Program-made: the position numbers and the translations under genes | Notes under the pieces: model-generated | Seen by the model: the letters and a program-made list of their open reading frames with translations, nothing else | Database searches by the model: none | What the model was told of the DNA's origin: nothing | Source of the DNA: Azolla caroliniana | Taxonomy: Eukaryota > Plantae > Polypodiophyta | Length of the DNA: 22,191 nt | Assembly (NCBI GenBank): GCA_043228905.1 | Contig: JBHGNT010000507.1 | Coordinates: forward strand, 1-22,191 | Direction: 5' to 3' | Shown: piece by piece, positions 120-11,200 of the stretch | Layout of the letters: each line of letters begins with the position of its first letter | How positions within the stretch are numbered: the first letter of the stretch is position 1

Positions 120-900
120 AAATGTGTGTATGATTAAATACATGTATGTGTGTATGATTCAATACATTTGTGTGTGTATGTGTATGATTAAATACATGTA
201 TGTGTGTGTATGATTGAATACATTTCTGTGTGTGTATGATTGAATACATTTCTGTGTGTGTATGATTGAATACATTTCTGTGTGTGATGGGTTTAGGGTT
301 ACATGTATGTGTGTATTTAAGATCTTCTTTGGGCTGTGAATGTGTGTGTTTGTTGTATGATTGAATACATTTATTTGGGAATGTGCGTGTATACATGTGT
401 ATGATTGAATACATTTCTGTGTGTGTATGATTGAATACATGTATGTGTGTATGATTGAATACATTTGTGTGTGTGATGGTTGAATACATGTATGTGTGTA
501 TTTAAGATCTTCTTTGGGCTGTGAATGTGTGTGTTTGTTGTATGATTGAATACATTTATTTGGGAATGTGTGTGTATACATGTGTATGATTGAATACATT
601 TGTGTGTGTGATGGTTGAATACATGTATGTGTGTATTTAAGATCTTCTTTGGGCTGTGAATGTGTGTGTTTGTTGTATGATGAATACATTTATTTGGGAA
701 TGTGTGTGTATACATGTGTATGATTGAATACATGTATTTGTGTATTTTAGATCTTCCATGGGCTGCGAATGTGTGTGCATGTGTATGATTGAATACATGT
801 TTGTGTGTATTTAAGATCTTCTATAGGCTGTGATTTAATACATGTATGTGTGCATTTAAGATCTCCCATGGGCTGTGTATGATTGAATACATGTATGATT
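120..900. repeat. Tandem minisatellite with core (TG)nTATGATTGAATACAT and higher-order blocks containing TTTAAGATCTTCTTTGGGCTGTGAATG
   Basis: Many visible copies of GTATGATTGAATACAT; longer blocks recur near 315, 500, 635, 745, 810 and 855. This array explains the His/Thr-rich minus-strand ORFs at 106-733. Confidence 0.95.
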
Positions 901-973: not shown

Positions 974-1125
974 CTTGAATTTGCCCATGTGATTCATGCA
1001 GTATTGGGCTCTTTTTTATGCCCACATTTGAATGTCAAATCTAAAATTTTGTATACATTCTTTGCGTTTTTTCTCCCTAAATAATAGTAATGTAATGAAT
1101 GCCTTTCTAAAAATGTTTTGTACAG

Positions 1126-3143
1126 ATGGCTAGTCGGTCCAAGATCTTCATAGACTTTGATGCAGATTGGGGTGAAACAATACCCTATGAAGGGAGGTAT
1201 GGCATGAATCATTTCTCTACTTTATATTGTGTATAAATAATAATGTTTGTGTGCTAACTTGAATGTTGGTTTAGGGTTTATGTAAGAAAGGGTGTTAGGT
1301 GCCCCAAATCCAATGATACGGAGGCTGAAAACATCATTACTCAAGACTCGAGCATGGATACGAACCCCATGCATGACGTGGGTCCAGGTGTTGAAGATAT
1401 CAAAGTAAATGGTGAGTTTATGTCCATTCTTATAATCATTATTGATGTAAGCATATTTTGGGTTTTTCTAATGCAAATGTGACACCATTGTTGTAGTGGA
1501 CCCTATGTCCCTCTTCAAGTGTGGAAGAGACTCAACAGGTATCAAATGTCGCACCTGTATTGTGGGAGATTCGTGTAGAAAAGAGGGGAGATGGTTTCGA
1601 AAAAAAGCGGACATGGAGGCCCATTTACAGAAGGCACATGGCATCCATGTAATACTGCCTCGGGGGCTAAAGATAGACGAAGAAGAGCAATCGACCTCCA
1701 TGAGGAGTACAGCCACATCATTCTTCAGCGAATACGAAAGACAACGATCAATAAATCGTTTTTTGGATCCGGAGCTCAAGTATAATAGATCACGCCAATC
1801 ACACATGAGGAAGTTGAGGACAAGAGCAATAAAAATCTTCAAAGCCACTCCGGACTCACTTCGAACATGCAAGGAGGCTGATTTCATTGCTCAATTCGTT
1901 AGCCAACAAATGGCCAGGTATGACGAGGGAAAGGAGCATAGGATGGCAAAAGTGAGGTTGAAGATTGCGGATGCGTCTAAAGATTATGTAAGTATGGTTT
2001 ATGATTTTGTGTGCATCTTATGTGAGTTTAAAACTTATGATTATGTGTGAATCTTATGTATGAATTGTAGTGTAAGAGTCATGGAATTCCCATACCAAAG
2101 GATGAGGCACATGTCGAGATCGATGGTGGTCAAGACCAACTGTCAGAATCGACAATGCAACAAGCAAGGAGGCCGAAAATCCAAATCCGCAGGAAAGAAG
2201 TGGACCCATGTAATTTGGAGTTCATTACATCATCTGACACAGATGAGGATGCAGACATTGGGATTGTCTTTGTTGGTCCAGGGACAATCTCGAAAACATG
2301 GGATAACTCTGCAAGAAATAAGTTCACCAGGTATGTTGTTATGCTGGGGGCATGATATCAATAGTTAACATCATGTTTGTTTAGTAGTTACTAATCTAGC
2401 CTAATAAACAGGTATCAGGTGGCATGCCGACGACTGGATGTAGCAGTCTTCTTGTCGGAGATACAACTATGTTCGTTGATCACAGTAGGGGAGATGGCAT
2501 CCACATGGATGATAACCCTCTTCCATTTATGGATGGAGTACTCGCTGCCCCCCGAGATCAACAAGCGGTTTCATATTGTGGATCCGCTATGGGTACAACT
2601 AGAAGGCCAAGGCGATAAGGTCAAAGACGTACTCACTCGTGTTCCTGAAAGGGATTATGTCTTCATTCCAATATTGAACGCAGGGCATTGGGTGCTTTGG
2701 TTGAAGATGCGACAAACTCCTACGGGTCTCGATGCCAAGGTGAGGAGCCCAATTATATTTTGTGATCCACTAAATATTCATCCGACTACCAGGGTGCGGA
2801 CATTGGGTGATTTGGCTATACGACATATCTCGAGTCGGACACATGACCATTGCATCATCAACAACGGGCAATTCCATGAATTGCGTATCCCAACCCAACC
2901 TAATGGGACCGATTGTGGGTATTACGTGATGCAAACTATTCGCATGTTGGTCGAGGAGTTGATTCAAGGATTTGAGTCCGATCAATTTGTAAGTATTTAT
3001 GAGATTTGAATTTGAGCATTTGTTTTTGTTTTTGTTGATGGCATCTTCAATTGTAGGGTAAGGAGCAATGGTTTGGATTCGAAGACGTGGAGCTCCTTCG
3101 GAAAATCATGGCAAAATGGGCACGAAGGACTTTGGGCATATGA
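1126..3143 (+). CDS. C2H2 zinc finger plus ULP1/peptidase C48 (SUMO-protease-like) protein, 532 aa, 6 exons, transposon-borne
   Basis: Exons 1126-1196, 1299-1411, 1497-1987, 2071-2330, 2412-2988 and 3057-3143 all have GT-AG junctions with compatible phases (1599 nt, no internal stop). C48 motifs: YVFIPILNAGHWVL (His), IIFCDPL (Asp), PTQPNGTDCGYYVM (Gln, Cys) and C-terminal WFGFEDVELLRK. CRTC...F-x5-M-x2-H-x4-H finger in exon 3. The ATG directly follows a CAG acceptor, so an upstream exon is possible. Confidence 0.85.
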
Positions 3144-3154
3144 CTACGTGGAGT

Positions 3155-3577
3155 CATTTTGCAATGGTTGTATATGACTCAATGTAAATCATTTTGGTTG
3201 TATATGAATCTCATTTTGGTTGTAGATGACTCAATGTAAATTGCAATGGTTGTAGATGACTCAATGTAAATCATTTTGGTTGTATATGAATCTCATTTTG
3301 GTTGTAGATGACTCAATGTAAATCATTTTGGTTGTAGATGACTCAATGTAAATCATTTTGGTTGTATATGACTCAATGTAAATCATTTTGGTTGTATATG
3401 AATCTCATATTGGTTGAATATGAATCAATTTTTGAATCTCATTTTGGTTGTATATGAATCTCATCTTGGTTGAATATGAATCAATTTTTGAATGGCATTT
3501 TGGTTGTATATGAATCTCATTTTGGTTGTGTATGAATCTCATTTTGGTTGTATATGAAAATCATTTTGGTTGTATAT
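3155..3577. repeat. Tandem minisatellite with core CATTTTGGTTGTA(T/G)ATGA, immediately 3' of the ULP1 gene
   Basis: More than a dozen copies with two alternating spacers (CTCAATGTAAAT and ATCT), beginning about 12 bp after the TGA at 3143. Confidence 0.95.
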
Positions 3578-3659: not shown

Positions 3660-3852
3660 GAAAGAGTAAGTATATAGAAAGAGTGTTGTAATCAAAGAAT
3701 GTTGTTGTAGAAAGAGTAAGTATATAGAAAGAGTGCTTCGGTCCTTGTTGTAAACAATACGAAAGACATAACAAGACTCAATGTCAATCTTATTCAAAGA
3801 CATAACAAGACTCGATGTCAATCTTCTTCAAAGACATAACAAGACTCAATGT
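3660..3852. repeat. Short local tandem duplications: GAAAGAGTAAGTATATAGAAAGAGTG x2 and AAAGACATAACAAGACTC(A/G)ATG x3
   Basis: Copies seen near 3660 and 3710, and near 3762, 3796 and 3829. Confidence 0.85.
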
Positions 3853-3861
3853 GATTAGTGT

Positions 3862-4253
3862 GGAGCTCGACTCATTCATGTTCATTAAAAAAGGGAGCCC
3901 CACTCATTAAAAAGGGAGCCCGACTCTAGTAAAAAGGGAGCCCGACTGATCAATGTGGAGCCCGACTCATTCTTGTTCATTAAAAAAGGGAGCCCCACTC
4001 ATTAAAAAGGGAGCCCGACTCTGGTAAAAGGGAGCCCGACTGATTAATGTGGAGCCAGACTCATTCTTGTTCATTAAAAAAGGGAGCCCCACTCATTAAA
4101 AAGGGAGCCCGACTTTGGTAAAAAGGGAGCCCGACTCATTCATGTTCATTAAAAAAGGGAGCCCCATTCATTAAAAAGGGAGCCCGACTCTGGTAAAAAG
4201 GGAGCCCGACTGATAATGTGGAGCCCGACTCATTAAAAAAGGGAGCCCGACAC
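3862..4253 (+). repeat. Array of 17 GGAGCCCGACTC-type 12-mers with A-tract spacers (higher-order unit ~95 bp)
   Basis: Motif starts at 3862, 3894, 3915, 3937, 3957, 3989, 4010, 4031, 4051, 4083, 4104, 4126, 4158, 4179, 4201, 4220 and 4242. Confidence 0.95.
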
Positions 4254-4422
4254 AGTAATAGGGAAGTGCCCAACTACGTGTAATGATGGCGTCTCAACAG
4301 TCATATTAACGACTACAGTAAATTAATTCACCAAATTCAGTAGCATGCACTAAGAGTCTTCCCATCATTCCCAATTAACCCATTCCCTTCCTTAATAGTC
4401 TATTAATCACTCGCACTCATAT

Positions 4423-4708
4423 CATTCACTCTCATTCTCGATCGTTAATCTACTCCATTCATGTGAATTATTTGAATTCATTCACTTGAATTCATTTGAT
4501 TTCATTCACTTCATTCACCTCAATCATTGGCATTCTTGATCATATTGTATTTGATTTCATTTGATCATATTGTAGGCCATTTGATTTCATTCACTCTCAT
4601 TCTCGATCATTAATCTACTCCATTCATGTGAATTATTTGAATTCATTCACTTGAATTCATTTGATTTCATTCACCTCAATCATTGGCATTCTTGATCATA
4701 TTGTATTT
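4423..4708. repeat. Direct duplication of a ~120-130 bp CATT/TTCA-rich segment directly upstream of the transposase ATG
   Basis: CATTCACTCTCATTCTCGATC(G/A)TTAATCTACTCCATTCATGTGAATTATTTGAATTC...CTTGATCATATTGTATTTG occurs at ~4423-4553 and again at ~4588-4709. Confidence 0.9.
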
Positions 4709-4711
4709 GCT

Positions 4712-7621
4712 ATGGAGAGCACAATGCATCATGGTGTCTTCGCCATGTCAGAAGATGAATTGGAGGATACGTCATGGTCATCCAATGCATCCGAGGACGA
4801 ATTGGAGGATCCTTTTGAGTCATCAGATTCCGATCGTGAGGATGAGGCGGTCGATCCCTTCATGTATTGTTCCCCCAGGTATTTTGCATTTTCAAGAGGT
4901 ACGTATAATTTGATGATTAAAGATTTATTGGGACAAGTTAAGGTAACATTGGAAGCATTACGTGATGTCGCAAGGGGAGCACCTCTTTCACTTCATGCAT
5001 GGAGGCGCATGAAGAGTCGTCTCATTCTCAGGTTTGAGAGTGCAATTTACCTTAAAGCATCACCTAATCTTCAAGTCTTATACGTCGAGAAATGGAGGGA
5101 AGTAGTATTAGCGTCACATGGTGACACATCCCATCACACGTTTTCAAAGACTCTTAAAGAGTTAAAGCTAGTTTATGCGACTGATGTACGTGATTATGGC
5201 ATCCCACCGGAGTACGTGAAAGCACTCATTACAAGTTGTGGTTGCCAAACGGTATCGAAGGTCGACTCGATAGAAGGTTTGGGATCAAGCATGGCCAAAT
5301 ATAACAAGACCCTACCCATAGAAGTGATCAAGGTAGAAACCCACCAATTAGACGATGCGCTCACGGATTTGCAAACCAAGTACCACACACGTTTAAGGAA
5401 AGGAGTCAAGAAGGGTATGCGTGTGACTAGGTATAGTTGCCATCGTGCTGGGACATCTCGACTTGCGTCTAATTCCACTCGACGACACAGGTGCACACCC
5501 CGATGTGGGTGCACATTCCATGTGGATGTTAGAATCAATAATGATGTTGACATTGAGACACTTACCATTTCAATATATGGACCTCACAGTGGTCATGTAC
5601 CATGTAGTAGGTCGGATGTGTACCATTTGCCAGTACACCCCAATGTCATAAGTTGTTGCAAAGATGACCTATTTGATGTTGGGTGTGCAAGGCATGTGGC
5701 ACGAATGAGCATGCGTAAGGAAGCATATCATAAGTCCAAGGCTAGTCCATTAGAGCTTGTTACCTATCGGTTCTTTATGATACCAAAGGAGGTCCATAAC
5801 ATGGCAAATAGGTTAAAAATCGGGAGTGTCATGACTAAGGTTGATTGGGCTTTGATGATGCAAGATGCCTATGCACTCCGAGATCTTGGGAAAGTGGCTC
5901 ATGTTCAACCCTACTTGACTGGTGAACCAGGATCTCCCCCCATACAACCATTTATCTTGATACTTCAAGATCAATGGATGTTGGAAATGTGTGAGCGGTT
6001 GACCCTAAACAACTCTTGGGCAATCGACTCGACATTTAAAACAAACCAATTCGGGCTACCATTATATGCAGCAGTTGCCCCCAACGCCATGGGAATTGGG
6101 ATCCCATTATGGTACATGCTTTGTAGTTCTGATAAGGGATCAAACCATGAGCAAGTGGCATTAGAAACTTGTTTGAGAGTCATATTCGCAAGGATGCCCA
6201 TGGTGAGGCCAAATGCGATAGTGATCGATAAATGTTGGACATCATATAATGCCATAACTAATGTGGTTGCAACAGACCGTCAATCTTGGATTGTTGTAAA
6301 TGGGCAACGGTCCCAAACACATTGTCGACTTTTGTTGTGTCAGTTTCACGCCAAAAAGTCATGGGTGGACAACTTGTTGCCAAAAGTAAGTGCAAATGAG
6401 AGAATCCATCTTTATCAACGAATGTGCCAACTGATGCAATGCATTACTGAATCATCATTCAATGCAATGTGTGAGGAGTTAAAGTTAGAATATGTGGACA
6501 AGCCCGGTGTTTGGCAATATATAGAAGGAGGATGGTGTGGCTTGACATGTGTGTGGAGGAAACTCTGGCCCAAGTTTGGTAGAATGTTCAACTATGGACA
6601 CGTTGACACTACCAATATTGTGGAAAGACATTGGCAGTTTATCAAGTATACTACCTTGAGGGGAAGAATAAACCGATCAATTACCGACCTTCTGCATGTC
6701 TTAATCGGGGATAGTGAAACTGGCACTTGCATAGGAGGAACGGTAATAGAGTGGTACAAGCAACGACAAGAAATATGTGAGAGTGGTCGGTTTGCACCCC
6801 GTGCGAATTGTAGGGATCAAAGGTCCCGACTTAAAGAAGCGGAGAGAATATTGGAAAGGTATGTCGACAATACTTCCACAATTGAAATTGTCGACGAGGC
6901 CCGATATTGGTTTAGAATCTTGAGCATGACGACTCCCACTCTATGGTATAATGTCTCACTCCAATGCTCATATTGTGATTGCCAAGACATTGTGAGTAAA
7001 TGTAAGCATTTACTAGGTATCCGAATGATTATTGAGAGGCATATGCCACATTTATGTGGCTCATTGCCTTTTATAGATCACGCGACCCAAATGCGAATGG
7101 ACCATAATACAGAAATAGAAGTGGAGGCAGAGGTAGAGCAAGTAGAGGAGACAAACCCCACAATATCCGAGATTGAATCATTCAAGTCCAAAATACAAAC
7201 GGTCATGAAAGCACTTCAATGTCTCGAGCAAGGGTTAGGAACCTTCGATCGTGCAACTATTGTCGAAGGTATACAAACATTGGAAGATGTGGCTGAGAAG
7301 GTGTATCGCGTTGGTGCACCAAAATCAACCAATAAAGAAGATGGTAGATCAATAAGTCGCAACCAACAAATCGGTGCCAAAAGAAGTGCAACAATAGACA
7401 TCTCGCAAGAACTTATTGGCAGCTCCCCAAACACTTCCAAATCCCACTCCGGAAAACTACAAAGAGGTGCTAGTCGGGCTAGGAGGAGATTGCCATTGGT
7501 TGACCATGAGAAGGTTCGGTGTTTGCGTTGTGATGGCTTGACCTTGACTTCAAGGGACTCAAATGTTACATGCTGTAAAAATTGTGGTTGCATCTTGCAA
7601 TCATCCCGACATGAGCCATAA
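4712..7621 (+). CDS. MULE/MuDRA-type DDE transposase with SWIM zinc finger, 969 aa, intronless
   Basis: First in-frame ATG of the 986-aa ORF is at 4712. Motifs (numbered on the 986-aa ORF): AIDSTFKTNQFGLPL (D456), IVIDK (D523), LLCQFH (CxxH), TTNIVERHW (E655), SWIM CDC-x6-CKH (772-783), WRKY/GCM1/FAR1-like RYSCHRAG...RCGC...HSGH (257-312), C-terminal CLRC...CKNC. Confidence 0.93.
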   Translation: MESTMHHGVFAMSEDELEDTSWSSNASEDELEDPFESSDSDREDEAVDPFMYCSPRYFAFSRGTYNLMIKDLLGQVKVTLEALRDVARGAPLSLHAWRRMKSRLILRFESAIYLKASPNLQVLYVEKWREVVLASHGDTSHHTFSKTLKELKLVYATDVRDYGIPPEYVKALITSCGCQTVSKVDSIEGLGSSMAKYNKTLPIEVIKVETHQLDDALTDLQTKYHTRLRKGVKKGMRVTRYSCHRAGTSRLASNSTRRHRCTPRCGCTFHVDVRINNDVDIETLTISIYGPHSGHVPCSRSDVYHLPVHPNVISCCKDDLFDVGCARHVARMSMRKEAYHKSKASPLELVTYRFFMIPKEVHNMANRLKIGSVMTKVDWALMMQDAYALRDLGKVAHVQPYLTGEPGSPPIQPFILILQDQWMLEMCERLTLNNSWAIDSTFKTNQFGLPLYAAVAPNAMGIGIPLWYMLCSSDKGSNHEQVALETCLRVIFARMPMVRPNAIVIDKCWTSYNAITNVVATDRQSWIVVNGQRSQTHCRLLLCQFHAKKSWVDNLLPKVSANERIHLYQRMCQLMQCITESSFNAMCEELKLEYVDKPGVWQYIEGGWCGLTCVWRKLWPKFGRMFNYGHVDTTNIVERHWQFIKYTTLRGRINRSITDLLHVLIGDSETGTCIGGTVIEWYKQRQEICESGRFAPRANCRDQRSRLKEAERILERYVDNTSTIEIVDEARYWFRILSMTTPTLWYNVSLQCSYCDCQDIVSKCKHLLGIRMIIERHMPHLCGSLPFIDHATQMRMDHNTEIEVEAEVEQVEETNPTISEIESFKSKIQTVMKALQCLEQGLGTFDRATIVEGIQTLEDVAEKVYRVGAPKSTNKEDGRSISRNQQIGAKRSATIDISQELIGSSPNTSKSHSGKLQRGASRARRRLPLVDHEKVRCLRCDGLTLTSRDSNVTCCKNCGCILQSSRHEP

Positions 7622-7806
7622 TCTTAATATGTAACGTGTATATTCATATTTCATTTTAGGGTTGTCAACATTTGACATTTTAATATTTTATGTAAGACTT
7701 GTTATTTGAATCTTTAGGTTTTGTTGAGAAATTTTATGATCAGTTTCATGGCAAATATTTGTTGTACACTTACAATTTTGTGGAGTTTTTGATGTTTGTT
7801 GCTACA

Positions 7807-7983
7807 GAGTCGGGCTCCTTTTGACAGAGTCGGGCTCCTTCTTACTGATGTGATCTGACAGCGGGGCTCCTTCTGACAGAGTCGGGCTCCCTCTTGCATA
7901 GGCTGTCTGACAGCGGGGCTCCTTTTTGACAGAGTCGGGCTCCCTGTGGCAGAGTCGGGCTCCTTTTCGCAGAGTCGGGCTCC
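7807..7983 (-). repeat. Subterminal array of 8 GAGTCGGGCTCC-type 12-mers (reverse complement of the 3862-4253 motif)
   Basis: Copies start at 7807, 7827, 7859, 7879, 7911, 7932, 7952 and 7972. Confidence 0.95.
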
Positions 7984-8121
7984 TTCTGACAGACGTTGTC
8001 AGCTTTTTATCCATCTTGGACGGTGGAGATCGAACGCGCCATCAGCGATGTGACCTGCACCGTCCCTCTCCGCGATTCCCTCACTTGCCCTCTTTAATAT
8101 TTGGTAGCAGTTAGTCACGAG

Positions 8122-8228
8122 CATACATCACACATCACACATCATACATCATAACATCATACATCATAACATCATACATATATACATACACACATGCATG
8201 CATGCATGCATGCATGTATGTATGTATG
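8122..8228. repeat. Compound simple repeat (CATCA/CATA)n-(ATGC)n-(TATG)n upstream of the host gene
   Basis: Seen directly between the element end and the ATG at 8276. Confidence 0.85.
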
Positions 8229-8275
8229 ACATGTGTTGTGTCAAGTCAAAGGCTCTGATCCACAGAGCCAGAGAC

Positions 8276-11200
8276 ATGGCTTCCGCCATGGCACCTTCAT
8301 CCCTCTTCTCTTCTTCTTCTTCTGCCCTTTCGTTCCACCCTTACCTGCGTGTCTTTGGTTGCAGAAATACCCTCAGGATCGGCATTAGCAGACCAACCAT
8401 CTTTGTTGTAAATGCATTAGCCAAGCAACAACCATCTCGACAAAATACTGCGAAGCCGTCTTCTTCTTCGAAAAGACCTGCAGATCTCCAGAGAGGAGGA
8501 GGAGGAGGAGGAGGAAAAGGAGGAGGAGGAGATGATGATCGATATCGAAACAGGAATAGTAGCAATAAGAACGTTAGCAGTAGAAACCAGAATAGTCGTA
8601 GTAGTGGTAATAGTGATAGAGGTACTGCTGGCTATGGGTATGGCGGTGGTGGGAACGTAAAAAGAGAACAGAGCTTGAAACGAGAACAGTTATACAGAGG
8701 TGGAAGCAAAACCAGTAGAAATTATGTTGAAGAAGTAGTAGACGAAGAAGAAGAAGAAGAAGATGATGATGATGAAGATGACGATGATGACTACGACGAT
8801 GATATTGATGAAGATGACGATGATGAGGCATATGAGTTTGATCCTGAGTCTTTGCTTCTTCCTCGGCCACCTGCAGGATTCATCCTTGATAGAGATGGCA
8901 CCACTGTCTCTCTCATGGCTCCTCCGAATAAACGAATCACTACCATTGTAGGCTCTTTTCCAATATTTGCCTTCTCCATTACTGGTTATTCTGGTTCTGG
9001 TTGTTTTTTAACGTTATAAAATACAACGTTTGCTCGGCATTAGAGTTTTTACTTTTAATAGAATATTGTGTTTCATTATATTCGGGTTCACTGTGTTTAT
9101 GCTGTATTAGGTTTTTTACAGTGGCAAAGTCCAATTTTTGTATTACGGCATTTAGTGCTACGAAATGCTATGGTCGATCTGCTAGGGTTTTCACTGCCAC
9201 AAAAATGCCATATTAGTCCGATTAGGGTCTATTGCTAAGAAAAGTCTAGTGTTCAAATCTCTGTAAAGGTTTTAATGAAGTTTTTTTTACAGCTGTAAAA
9301 TACCATGTCTATTCTATGTAAGGATGGACTGTTACAAAATACCATTCAAAGACTTTGTTATGGTTCTGGATTAGGTTTTTACTGCTAACAAGCTTCCAGT
9401 GTTCAACTCTATGCAAAGGTTTGGATTGGGTTTTTACTGCTACAAAATTCCATTTTTATTCGAACCAAGGTTTAACTGTTAAATAATACCATGTTTATTA
9501 GATGTGGCTTACCTTCACAAATTACCTTCTTGGTCCTGTACTAAGATTTTTCAGTCACAAAATATCTTTGCAAAAGTGTCTGGATTAGGGTTTGTTGCTG
9601 CAAACGTTCTCATTATGGTTTTTATCACTACGAAAACTGCAGATTTCATTAGAGATTCTGGCCAGGATTTTTACTTTTTACAATCCATTCCTTTTTATTT
9701 ATCGCAGGTTGATCCTGCAACCAAATTGCCTCTGGATTGCCTCATAAGACGAGTTTTCTCGAGCATCGATGCCAGACAGTGCTTTCTTCTCTGCCCTCTT
9801 GACACGTGAGTCTATCTTAAATCCATTATTTTATACTATTGTGGAATTATTCCTGCCATATGTCATCTGGCGCTAAATGACTAAGATAATTCTCTGATGT
9901 TAATAACGATATGGATTATCTCAGTCCAGTGCAAATACTAAGAATCAATGGAGAAGATAAAGTTCTGAAGGAGGTTTGTATCATTCCCATCAGATGGTCA
10001 ACTCAATTGATTTATAATAAAAAATTAGTCTGAATGATTTCTCATCTAATGGATATTATTTCGTGATCCTTGTGGATATTACAGATTACAGATGAGGAGT
10101 TGGAGGACATTTTTCCTACTGCATCATACGAACTAGCAAAGAGGCGCCTGCATCTAACCTTTAGCGGGTAATTATGCTGATATCTTTCAAAGCATGATTT
10201 TGCATTATCAACTTTAAACTCTTATATTTGCTTACTAAAACAGTGTTTAAGGTAAGGCCATTCTTCCAATTACCAATAATGTGTTCACAATTACAAATCA
10301 ACAGGTGTTTGTTGTTTGTGTATCTTTCTAAGTGCTCAACTATGTATATGATCTACTATCCCCTGGGGAAATTGAACTTTATCCAAAAGCCTCAATCTTC
10401 TGAATGTGGTTGACATCCTCTCAATGTTGTTGCAATGAACCATGGGATTACAGACTTTCTCATTCAAACATGAATTTTCATAAATATTCAACATATAAGA
10501 GAGAAGTCATAACAAATAAACTTACGCAAATATATAGCATTACGAATATCACAAAAATATCTTTTATCCTTGTACGCTTCCTAGAAGAACTGTACTGGAT
10601 TGAAGAAAAGGTTTAGTCTAAGTCTTAATATATCGAGTCTTTTAGAGGAGAAACTGTGGTATTTAAATATATGAACATTCCTTGATCATCTAGAATTCCA
10701 AGTTTTGAAGGCTTTCAAATGTTTTCTAAAATAACTATGTAGTATGGGCCGCATGATGATTATGTAGACTATGCTTTGGTTTCCATTTCTTTCTTTGCTA
10801 TGTTTCCAAATGTTCAGGTCTTGAGGGCAAACTAGATATGTTTTGGGGTTGGGACATCTTCAATATACTATCAATTATTTTCTAAAATAAAATCTTTCTG
10901 CATAATAGATATCCAAAATGTTATAGAAGAGTTGTTTTTATTGAAATTGGACACAAGGAATGAGGGTTGCTAACTTGTTGCAATGACATGCAGCTATTGC
11001 TTGACTTTGCGAGGTGGCTTTTGTTACTCAGAGAACGATCTAATGGATGTTAATACAGGTTTTGCTACGCATGATGTCTCTTTACGTGAATTTCTTTGCA
11101 CAATTTTTATGCCAATATTTGTACATGTGAAATTTGAATCAACACTATGATGATTGTGTTTCAGTATATGGTGGAAGTGGTGACCACTCTTTACATGAAG

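Follow-up and report, generated by a model that had tools for sequence, protein, structure and literature searches.

Inverted arrays of a short motif in a Mutator-like element of the fern Azolla caroliniana: most likely docking sites for a protein of the element

Introduction

Why is a 12-bp sequence repeated many times, in opposite orientations, on the two sides of a transposase gene? The question is raised by a stretch of 22,191 nucleotides from the fern Azolla caroliniana (GenBank assembly GCA_043228905.1, contig JBHGNT010000507.1, positions 1 to 22,191 of the forward strand), which is called the window here and is always meant at its full length. A fern Mutator-like element (MULE), with genes for a transposase and for a ULP protease, lies for the most part within the window. 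An original prediction had described the repeated 12-mer as an iteron-like protein-binding site that selection keeps on one face of the DNA helix. The analysis reported here suggests that the arrays are most likely docking sites for a protein encoded by the element. The transposase is favoured over the ULP protein as the binder, with a probability of roughly 0.55.

The two arrays of the window

The arrays are located as follows.

3862..4253, + strand: internal array, made of 17 GGAGCCCGACTC motifs separated by A-rich spacers; its 95-bp higher-order unit (32+21+22+20) has been amplified about 3.5 times
7807..7983, - strand: right subterminal array, 8 copies (6 exact and 2 degenerate, GGAGCCCCGCTG); spacers with TGTCA; partly built of a 52-bp unit (20+32)

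Motif scans with at most two mismatches returned the 17 copies on the + strand and the six exact copies on the - strand. The two degenerate copies, at 7859 and 7911, are found when three mismatches are allowed and bring the right array to its total of eight. By chance, 0.26 matches to the motif are expected in shuffled sequence, and 24 matches were reached in 0 of 100 shuffles. The start-to-start distances are 32,21,22,20,32,21,21,20,32,21,22,32,21,22,19,22 in the left array and 20,32,20,32,21,20,20 in the right array. The spacers are A-rich and of the ATTAAAAAG type on the left, and of the TGTCAGAA type on the right. The end of the last left-array motif is separated from the transposase ATG (4712) by 458 bp. 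The copy numbers and distances that had been noticed earlier were reproduced exactly by these scans, and the statement that the spacers are largely different between the arrays also holds.

An RNA hairpin between the inverted arrays was considered and rejected. As the spacers differ, the best inverted pair measures 35 nt at 86%.

Arrays and motifs in sister families

The loci used for comparison all come from short metagenome contigs (L001, L002 and so on), which may join different copies. Plant DNA is evidently present in the ENA metagenome assemblies whose contigs encode the closer relatives of the transposase (69-98% identity). The closest named relatives belong to another fern, Adiantum nelumboides, at 38-47% identity.

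Three sister families, with transposases that are 69-74% identical, carry arrays at the same places and in the same orientations, and each has its own variant 11-13-mer. L002 (74% identical transposase) is a complete 7.9-kb element with terminal inverted repeats (TIRs) that are 95% identical. Its motif, GGTCGCCCAACC, is present in 13 + strand copies at the left end and in 14 more, also +, between the ULP gene and the transposase gene; the right end has five copies on the - strand. L007, a member of the L004 family (70-73%), has the motif CCTAACCCGGG in arrays of 10, 8 and 10 copies at the same places. As for L003, L005 and L063 (69-70%), an array of 10-15 copies of GTAGCCCGGCTC follows straight after the left TIR and precedes the transposase; in these contigs, the stretch from the left TIR to the transposase has no ULP gene. 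No comparable arrays are present in the outgroup contigs L014 and L015, which are fragments.

The motif columns hold about 2 bits per position in every array, and the flanks 0.1-1 bit. The motifs of the families differ from one another by point mutations around a CCC(G/A) core. L013, with a transposase 98% identical to that of the window, keeps the motif in arrays that, like its TIR, are merely 72-76% identical to those of the window. Compared with window positions 3852-8123, L013 is a mosaic: nucleotide identity is 93% over 4195-7819 (the transposase gene), and the spacers and the spacing are different. This mosaic suggests either recombination or ends that evolve much faster than the gene.

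A conserved motif amid diverged spacers is the pattern that selection on a binding site would produce. Because the arrays recur in the sister families, the motif is conserved over the spacers, and the motif is also present at the true left end of the element (see below), the arrays appear to be selected and family-specific binding sites. The comparison therefore supports the part of the original prediction in which the 12-mer was read as a selected protein-binding site.

The terminal arrays share a further feature. In all families, their spacers contain a TGTCA/TGACA co-motif, which was counted in the following regions.

Window 7807-7983, right array: 6 co-motifs
L060 1424-1560, left array: 5 co-motifs
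L007 7951-8220, right array: 12 co-motifs
L005 2574-2680, first five units: 3 co-motifs

Internal arrays have 0-1 of these co-motifs. The co-motif may thus mark an array as an "end".

Two other observations were made on the sister arrays. The degenerate motifs of L002, L007 and L005 mostly show CG changed to CA or TG (GGTCACCCAACC, CCTAACCCAGG, GTAGCCCAGCTC). Such changes are the signature of methyl-CpG decay and hint that the arrays may be methylated at times. Furthermore, L003 (3444-3751) and L063 (3540-3860) carry a 20-bp array of the AAATTTGTAACTTTGGTCTG type after the transposase stop codon, instead of an inverted motif array. The right part of the L003-family element therefore seems to be organised differently.

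Layout and ends of the element

From left to right, the window contains the ULP protease gene, the internal array, the transposase gene, the right array and a 139-bp outer TIR, the left end being off the window. The full element would measure roughly 9-10 kb and have the order TIR, array (+), ULP gene, array (+), transposase gene, array (-), TIR. The parts that define its ends and the regions next to the arrays are listed here.

7984..8122, - strand: outer non-repetitive part of the right TIR, 139 bp, with its end ...GTCACGAGC at 8122
4254..4711, + strand: presumed promoter and 5' untranslated region of the transposase gene (promoter role suggested by position); block GTCATATTAACG at 4300-4311 and a family-specific short tandem repeat at 4452-4683
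L002 594-603, L007 1043-1052, L060 1573-1585 and L022 (reverse) about 1375: TATAAAAACC(C)TG box

L001, a 98%-identical copy at another site, matches the window to about 8128 and then diverges. The terminus ending in GTCACGAGC is common to 13 insertions with different flanks, and the outer TIR of the window is homologous to the TIRs of L002, L003 and L004/L007. Since the 139-bp non-repetitive outer TIR stands outside the array, the right array is subterminal; it had been predicted to be so, and it adjoins an outer TIR whose end is fixed by the 13 insertions. Long TIRs (>100 bp) are also found in L002, where 127-254 and 7873-7996 are 95% identical, and both TIRs are present in L007. In the complete elements, the TIRs have 124-128 bp and 95% identity.

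The left TIR and the left-terminal array were searched for within the window and were not found. Positions 1-1125 of the window resemble the end of a 5' exon followed by a repeat-filled intron of the ULP gene. A scan of the metagenome contigs for the motif plus TGTCA gave 16 contigs with at least two motif copies, and two of the 16, L060 and L022, hold the left end of the window family. This end consists of a TIR of about 140 bp, six + strand motifs spaced 12,32,20,32,20, and a TATAAAAACC box, read as a TATA box. ULP exon 1 lies about 1.3 kb past the box and is 93% and 89% identical to window 1114-1277 in the two contigs. Following this geometry, the window copy should have its left end a few hundred bases upstream of position 1. 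The left terminal array (L060) and the right one have the same 52-bp (32+20) unit in mirror image. A search for the motif at the true left end had been proposed as a check of the binding-site idea, and the motif was indeed found there, beside the TIR. The left array of the window is internal, as was thought, because a ULP gene is located upstream of it in every copy of three families.

The sequence following the internal array is partly conserved between families, and the GTCATATTAACG block is common to the window and L002. The TATAAAAACC box is found 10-25 bp after the left-terminal arrays and is conserved in three families (L002, L007 and the window family). This box is probably the promoter of the ULP gene, carried by the TIR.

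Spacing of the motifs and growth of the arrays

Regular spacing was the main argument for helical phasing in the original prediction. Tandem Repeats Finder describes the left array as a 95-bp unit in 3.1 copies with 94% match, plus a partial unit, and reports a 52-bp unit (20+32) within the right array. The 16 left spacings are therefore not independent of one another. In L001, L032 and L054, which belong to the window family, the internal array has 4-5 motifs, e.g., with the spacing 20,32,22,22. Five internal motifs are typical, and copies that are 98% identical range from 5 to 17 internal motifs and from 6 to 8 right-hand motifs. Given the 95-bp unit and the 4-5 motifs seen elsewhere, the long regular series of the window is one short series that was copied several times.

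Phase clustering at a period of 10.5 bp was measured with the Rayleigh statistic, and the raw window series gives an R(10.5) of 0.89. When duplicated units are counted once, the value for the window family is 0.62. The three other families give 0.38 (0.38-0.40), for which a control with a jitter of +/-5 bp yields P = 0.0003; for their spacings >25 bp alone, the jitter control yields P = 0.035. Both P values are optimistic, since neighbouring units within an array are still related by duplication. Spacings of 18, 24, 26 and 28 bp are common across the families. Series that speak against strict phasing include 18,18,24,18 in the right array of L002, 28,28,28 in the internal array of L007 and one 12-bp spacing in L060. 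The spacings of L013, with its 98%-identical transposase, are 24, 39, 44, 20 and 24, and this locus on its own is not phased.

Spacings near 20 and near 32 bp nevertheless reappear as classes in the terminal arrays of every family and suggest some constraint on the geometry. The data point to a loose preference for about two and three helical turns rather than to strict phasing. Of the earlier proposal, the 10.5-bp preference thus stands in a loose form across families; strict phasing does not, in view of the unit duplication, L013 and the 18- and 28-bp arrays. The arrays grow and shrink through higher-order units that duplicate in tandem, and this process, more than selection on the helical phase, is the source of the regular spacing in the window copy.

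The transposase as candidate binder

The transposase is encoded by a single open reading frame (ORF) with the following features.

4712..7621, + strand: MULE transposase gene, single ORF, 969 aa
5402..5599 (aa 231-296): putative N-terminal zinc finger of the WRKY/FAR1 type
About 6017..6277: MULE catalytic domain (Pfam)
About 6965..7021: SWIM-like CxC...CxH motif

The MULE family PF10551 is matched with E = 2e-9 (38 bits against a cutoff of 27.6), and all homologues are MULE-domain proteins. The C-terminal tail is rich in Cys. The C/H ligands of the finger are conserved in the alignment, and a structural model of the finger region has its best Foldseek matches among the DNA-binding domains of AFT2, AtWRKY18, AtWRKY1 and GCM. 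Between families, the core of the transposase is 82-87% identical, as opposed to 49-60% in the zinc-finger region.

According to the favoured reading, several transposase molecules would load on the terminal arrays through the fast-evolving, putative N-terminal WRKY/FAR1-type finger and would then pair and cut the ends, as experiments have shown for the mosquito element Muta1. The internal array, which lies about 460 bp before the transposase ATG and has the same orientation as the left-terminal array, might serve as a regulatory platform. If bound there, a protein of the element could switch on the promoter of the transposase gene or protect it from silencing. For the ULP gene, the same regulatory role could fall to the left-terminal array, 10-25 bp before the TATAAAAACC box. 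Autoregulation and looping between the arrays, both put forward in the original prediction, are conceivable.

Several results weigh against this reading. The Pfam FAR1 match of the transposase, with E = 0.026, is under its cutoff. The fold matches of the finger are weak (E = 0.05-0.3), and the model has a predicted local distance difference test score (pLDDT) of 64 overall and 75-88 in the core. Moreover, there is no clean correlation between finger and motif: finger identity is 59% between the window and L003 families, whose motifs agree at 10 of 12 positions, and 77% between the L004 and L003 families, whose motifs agree at 9 of 12. The ULP protein carries a finger-like motif too and diverges further (47-56% identity); on divergence alone, it would be an equally plausible binder. 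In the L003 family, a 15-copy array persists although no ULP gene separates the left TIR from the transposase, which favours the transposase; the family may nevertheless carry such a gene downstream, as its contigs end 270-490 bp after the transposase stop codon and do not reach the right array. Finally, no target-site duplication of 8-11 bp was found at the complete elements L002 and L007 or at the 13 right ends, in contigs that may join different copies.

The ULP gene

The second gene of the element lies upstream of the internal array.

1126..3161, + strand: ULP (Peptidase_C48) gene, putative exons 1126-1196, 1496-2050, 2060-2368, 2419-3009 and 3054-3161

Its splice sites were read by eye, and the exons were searched singly, not as a joined protein. 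The exon at 2419-3009 matches Pfam Peptidase_C48 (PF02902) with E = 5e-9, and values range from 5e-9 to 2e-10 across three families. In tblastx comparisons, the gene is syntenic with the ULP genes of L002 and L007. Exon 2 encodes a conserved finger-like motif, C-x5-C...H-x4-H. The His (GHWVLW), Asp and Cys (DCG) residues of the protease are conserved in the alignment. With 47-56% identity between families, the ULP protein diverges more than any other protein that the element encodes. Pfam scans of the ULP exons and of other ORFs found Peptidase_C48 only and no VANC-type domain, and small or spliced genes could escape such scans.

ULP-carrying MULEs are known in angiosperms, and the capture of Ulp1 by non-TIR MULEs has been dated to the monocot/eudicot split (PMC13317346). 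Because of this date, the ULP gene of a fern MULE with TIRs would represent either an older association or an independent capture.

Comparison with known systems

Four groups of transposable elements resemble the fern element in part. In Muta1, a MULE of Aedes aegypti, each end has nine subterminal repeats of 12 bp, and these increase the binding of the transposase as well as cleavage and excision (PMC5499845). Both elements belong to the Mutator superfamily, and both carry a 12-bp motif many times at the two ends in inverted orientation. In Muta1, however, the repeats are 3-4 bp apart, and the 145-bp TIR consists entirely of them and a 10-bp terminal motif. The fern arrays begin 139 bp inside the terminus, within a unique outer TIR, and have spacers of 8-20 bp, so that the fern element does not have the foldback TIR architecture of Muta1. 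It also possesses a third, internal array and a ULP gene.

The VANDAL21 and VANDAL6 elements of Arabidopsis have family-specific, non-coding motif arrays in one orientation, which duplicate in tandem and are bound by the anti-silencing protein VANC (PMC5735166, PMC10398659). The likeness consists in multi-gene MULEs with dense, same-orientation, family-specific non-coding arrays, also upstream of the transposase gene, that change by tandem duplication. In contrast, no VANC-type protein was detected in the fern element, its TIRs are long, and its arrays are also part of the ends. The fern motif is GC-rich and contains CpG, whereas the VANDAL motif is YAGTATTAY, and the hosts are a fern and crucifers.

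A 12-bp subterminal motif is also known for TnpA of the En/Spm element. The AtMu1c transposase binds its own TIRs and trans-activates cognate copies, as described in a preprint that also covers TnpA regulatory systems (bioRxiv 10.64898/2026.08.24.746577). In such systems, repeated short subterminal motifs double as promoter-proximal sites for a protein with which the element regulates its own transcription, and the fern arrays may do the same. En/Spm differs in belonging to another superfamily, with CACTA ends and separate TnpA and TnpD proteins, and AtMu1 lacks an internal array.

MULEs with multiple or internal TIRs (Ferguson and Jiang 2012, PMC3310237) and the ULP-carrying Kaonashi/KIU elements are similar in having a C48 gene inside a MULE and end-derived sequence that is repeated internally. 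In the fern element, it is the motif array alone that is repeated internally, not the outer TIR. In the fern element, known features meet in a new arrangement: the outer TIRs are unique, arrays stand at the ends, and a third array on the promoter side lacks the terminal co-motif.

Alternative explanations

The arrays might be targets not of the transposase but of the ULP protein, acting as a zinc-finger-plus-deSUMOylase accessory protein that removes silencing marks and would be the fern counterpart of VANC/KIU. This seems rather unlikely. The motifs do resemble VANC targets in being dense, one-oriented, non-coding, family-variable and changed by tandem duplication (PMC5735166). The protein has kept its C-x5-C...H-x4-H motif and its catalytic residues through strong divergence, and some VANC genes contain a Ulp1 domain (PMC13317346). 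However, the Pfam scans of the ULP exons gave no VANC-type domain, the terminal arrays belong to the TIRs and mirror each other, as transposase sites would be expected to do, and the array of the L003 family is kept with no ULP gene between TIR and transposase. The long TIRs are a further difference from the VANDALs, which are described as non-TIR MULEs (PMC13317346). A more specific proposal, that arrays and ULP zinc-finger protein form an independently evolved anti-silencing system of ferns in which the deSUMOylating protease is recruited by its own finger to the family-specific arrays in front of the two genes, is considered quite improbable. If it were true, the system would parallel VANC/KIU in a TIR-MULE and be far older than the proposed angiosperm capture of Ulp1.

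Two other explanations were considered. The internal array could be a former left end, with the ULP module inserted into the left array of a transposase-only ancestor and the inner half cut off from the end, or it could still be the end of a shorter transposase-only unit. The L003 family offers a parallel, since in L003, L005 and L063 the left TIR runs directly into the array and then the transposase. There, the array opens with five units of the terminal type (TGACA spacers; 32,20,32,20) and continues with A-rich units of the internal type; what follows it is homologous to the sequence downstream of the internal arrays in other families. Nevertheless, no remnant of an outer TIR stands beside the internal array in the window, L001, L002 or L007, and all copies of the window family stay homologous upstream of it. 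Loss of the ULP gene by recombination between two direct arrays would leave an identical structure, and a distant relative from Adiantum also has a C48 gene beside the transposase. The transposase tree shows a three-way split of L003, L004 and (L002 + window), so that gain and loss of the ULP gene cannot be ordered. A relic end, as suggested in the original prediction, therefore finds its match in the left subterminal array of the L003 family but no TIR remnant at the internal array, and it is held to be decidedly doubtful. It is highly unlikely that the arrays have no sequence-specific function at all and are fast-evolving minisatellites, with regular spacing as a by-product of unit duplication. 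The 95-bp and 52-bp units do account for most of the regular spacing, the number of motifs is unstable between copies, and several unrelated tandem repeats occupy the same non-coding regions. Yet the same motif is present in three separate arrays with unrelated spacers, at a frequency far above the chance expectation of the shuffled sequence, and it is kept in the subfamily of L013 despite the low identity of arrays and TIR. Moreover, the places and orientations of the arrays are conserved in four families despite the change of motif. Docking of an element-encoded protein, with the transposase as favoured candidate, remains the preferred explanation.

Other non-coding DNA and flanking sequences

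The non-coding DNA of the element contains four further tandem-repeat blocks, at window positions 122-900, 3165-3577, 3762-3852 and 4452-4683. In the presumed first intron of the ULP gene, the repeated unit measures 26 bp. Units of 22 bp (TCATTTTGGTTGTATATGAATC) and 34 bp are found in the stretch from the ULP gene to the internal array. Another unit, of 24/56 bp, is repeated just before the transposase ATG, where the sister families have different repeats.

Outside the right terminus (window 8123-8230), an (ATAC)n/(GTAT)n-like microsatellite is present in about 11 of the 13 insertions with different flanks. Right flanks of this kind were seen in L001, L033, L035, L036, L037, L047, L048, L051, L053 and L058, and the flanks of the L005 and L007 families resemble them. 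This suggests either a target preference or repeats generated at the insertion sites.

The right end of the element is located about 110-150 bp upstream of the ATG of a host gene both in the window (8276-9019) and in L001 (4372 onward), and the two host genes are different. Both ATGs open Ser-rich N-termini that resemble transit peptides. The ORF beyond the element in the window includes a long acidic tract derived from triplet repeats (8493-8826). Mutator elements favour the 5' ends of genes, and the insertions close to an ATG fit this preference.

Elements of different families can also be close neighbours. A right end of the window family lies within a few bases of a left end of the L002 family, tail to head, and both contigs span the junction (L002 1-130, L054 3856-4110).

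Pfam scans of nine other ORFs of the window gave no matches, and no sequence of human, viral or toxin-related appearance was noticed in it. A scan of the window for bacterial-type promoters and terminators found nothing and is irrelevant to a plant sequence.

Significance

The four sister families, with their near-identical catalytic core and similar outer TIR, offer a natural experiment on the evolution of the DNA-recognition code of a transposon. Each of them has replaced its 11-13-bp motif in all arrays at once. Arrays of the "end" type, with the TGTCA co-motif, can be separated from the promoter-side array without it, and it is therefore testable whether a single protein serves both transposition and self-regulation. 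Furthermore, the motif and the TIR delimit the ends of the element, which is of use in genome annotation. With the Azolla element, the ULP-carrying MULEs with family-specific motif arrays are extended to the ferns.

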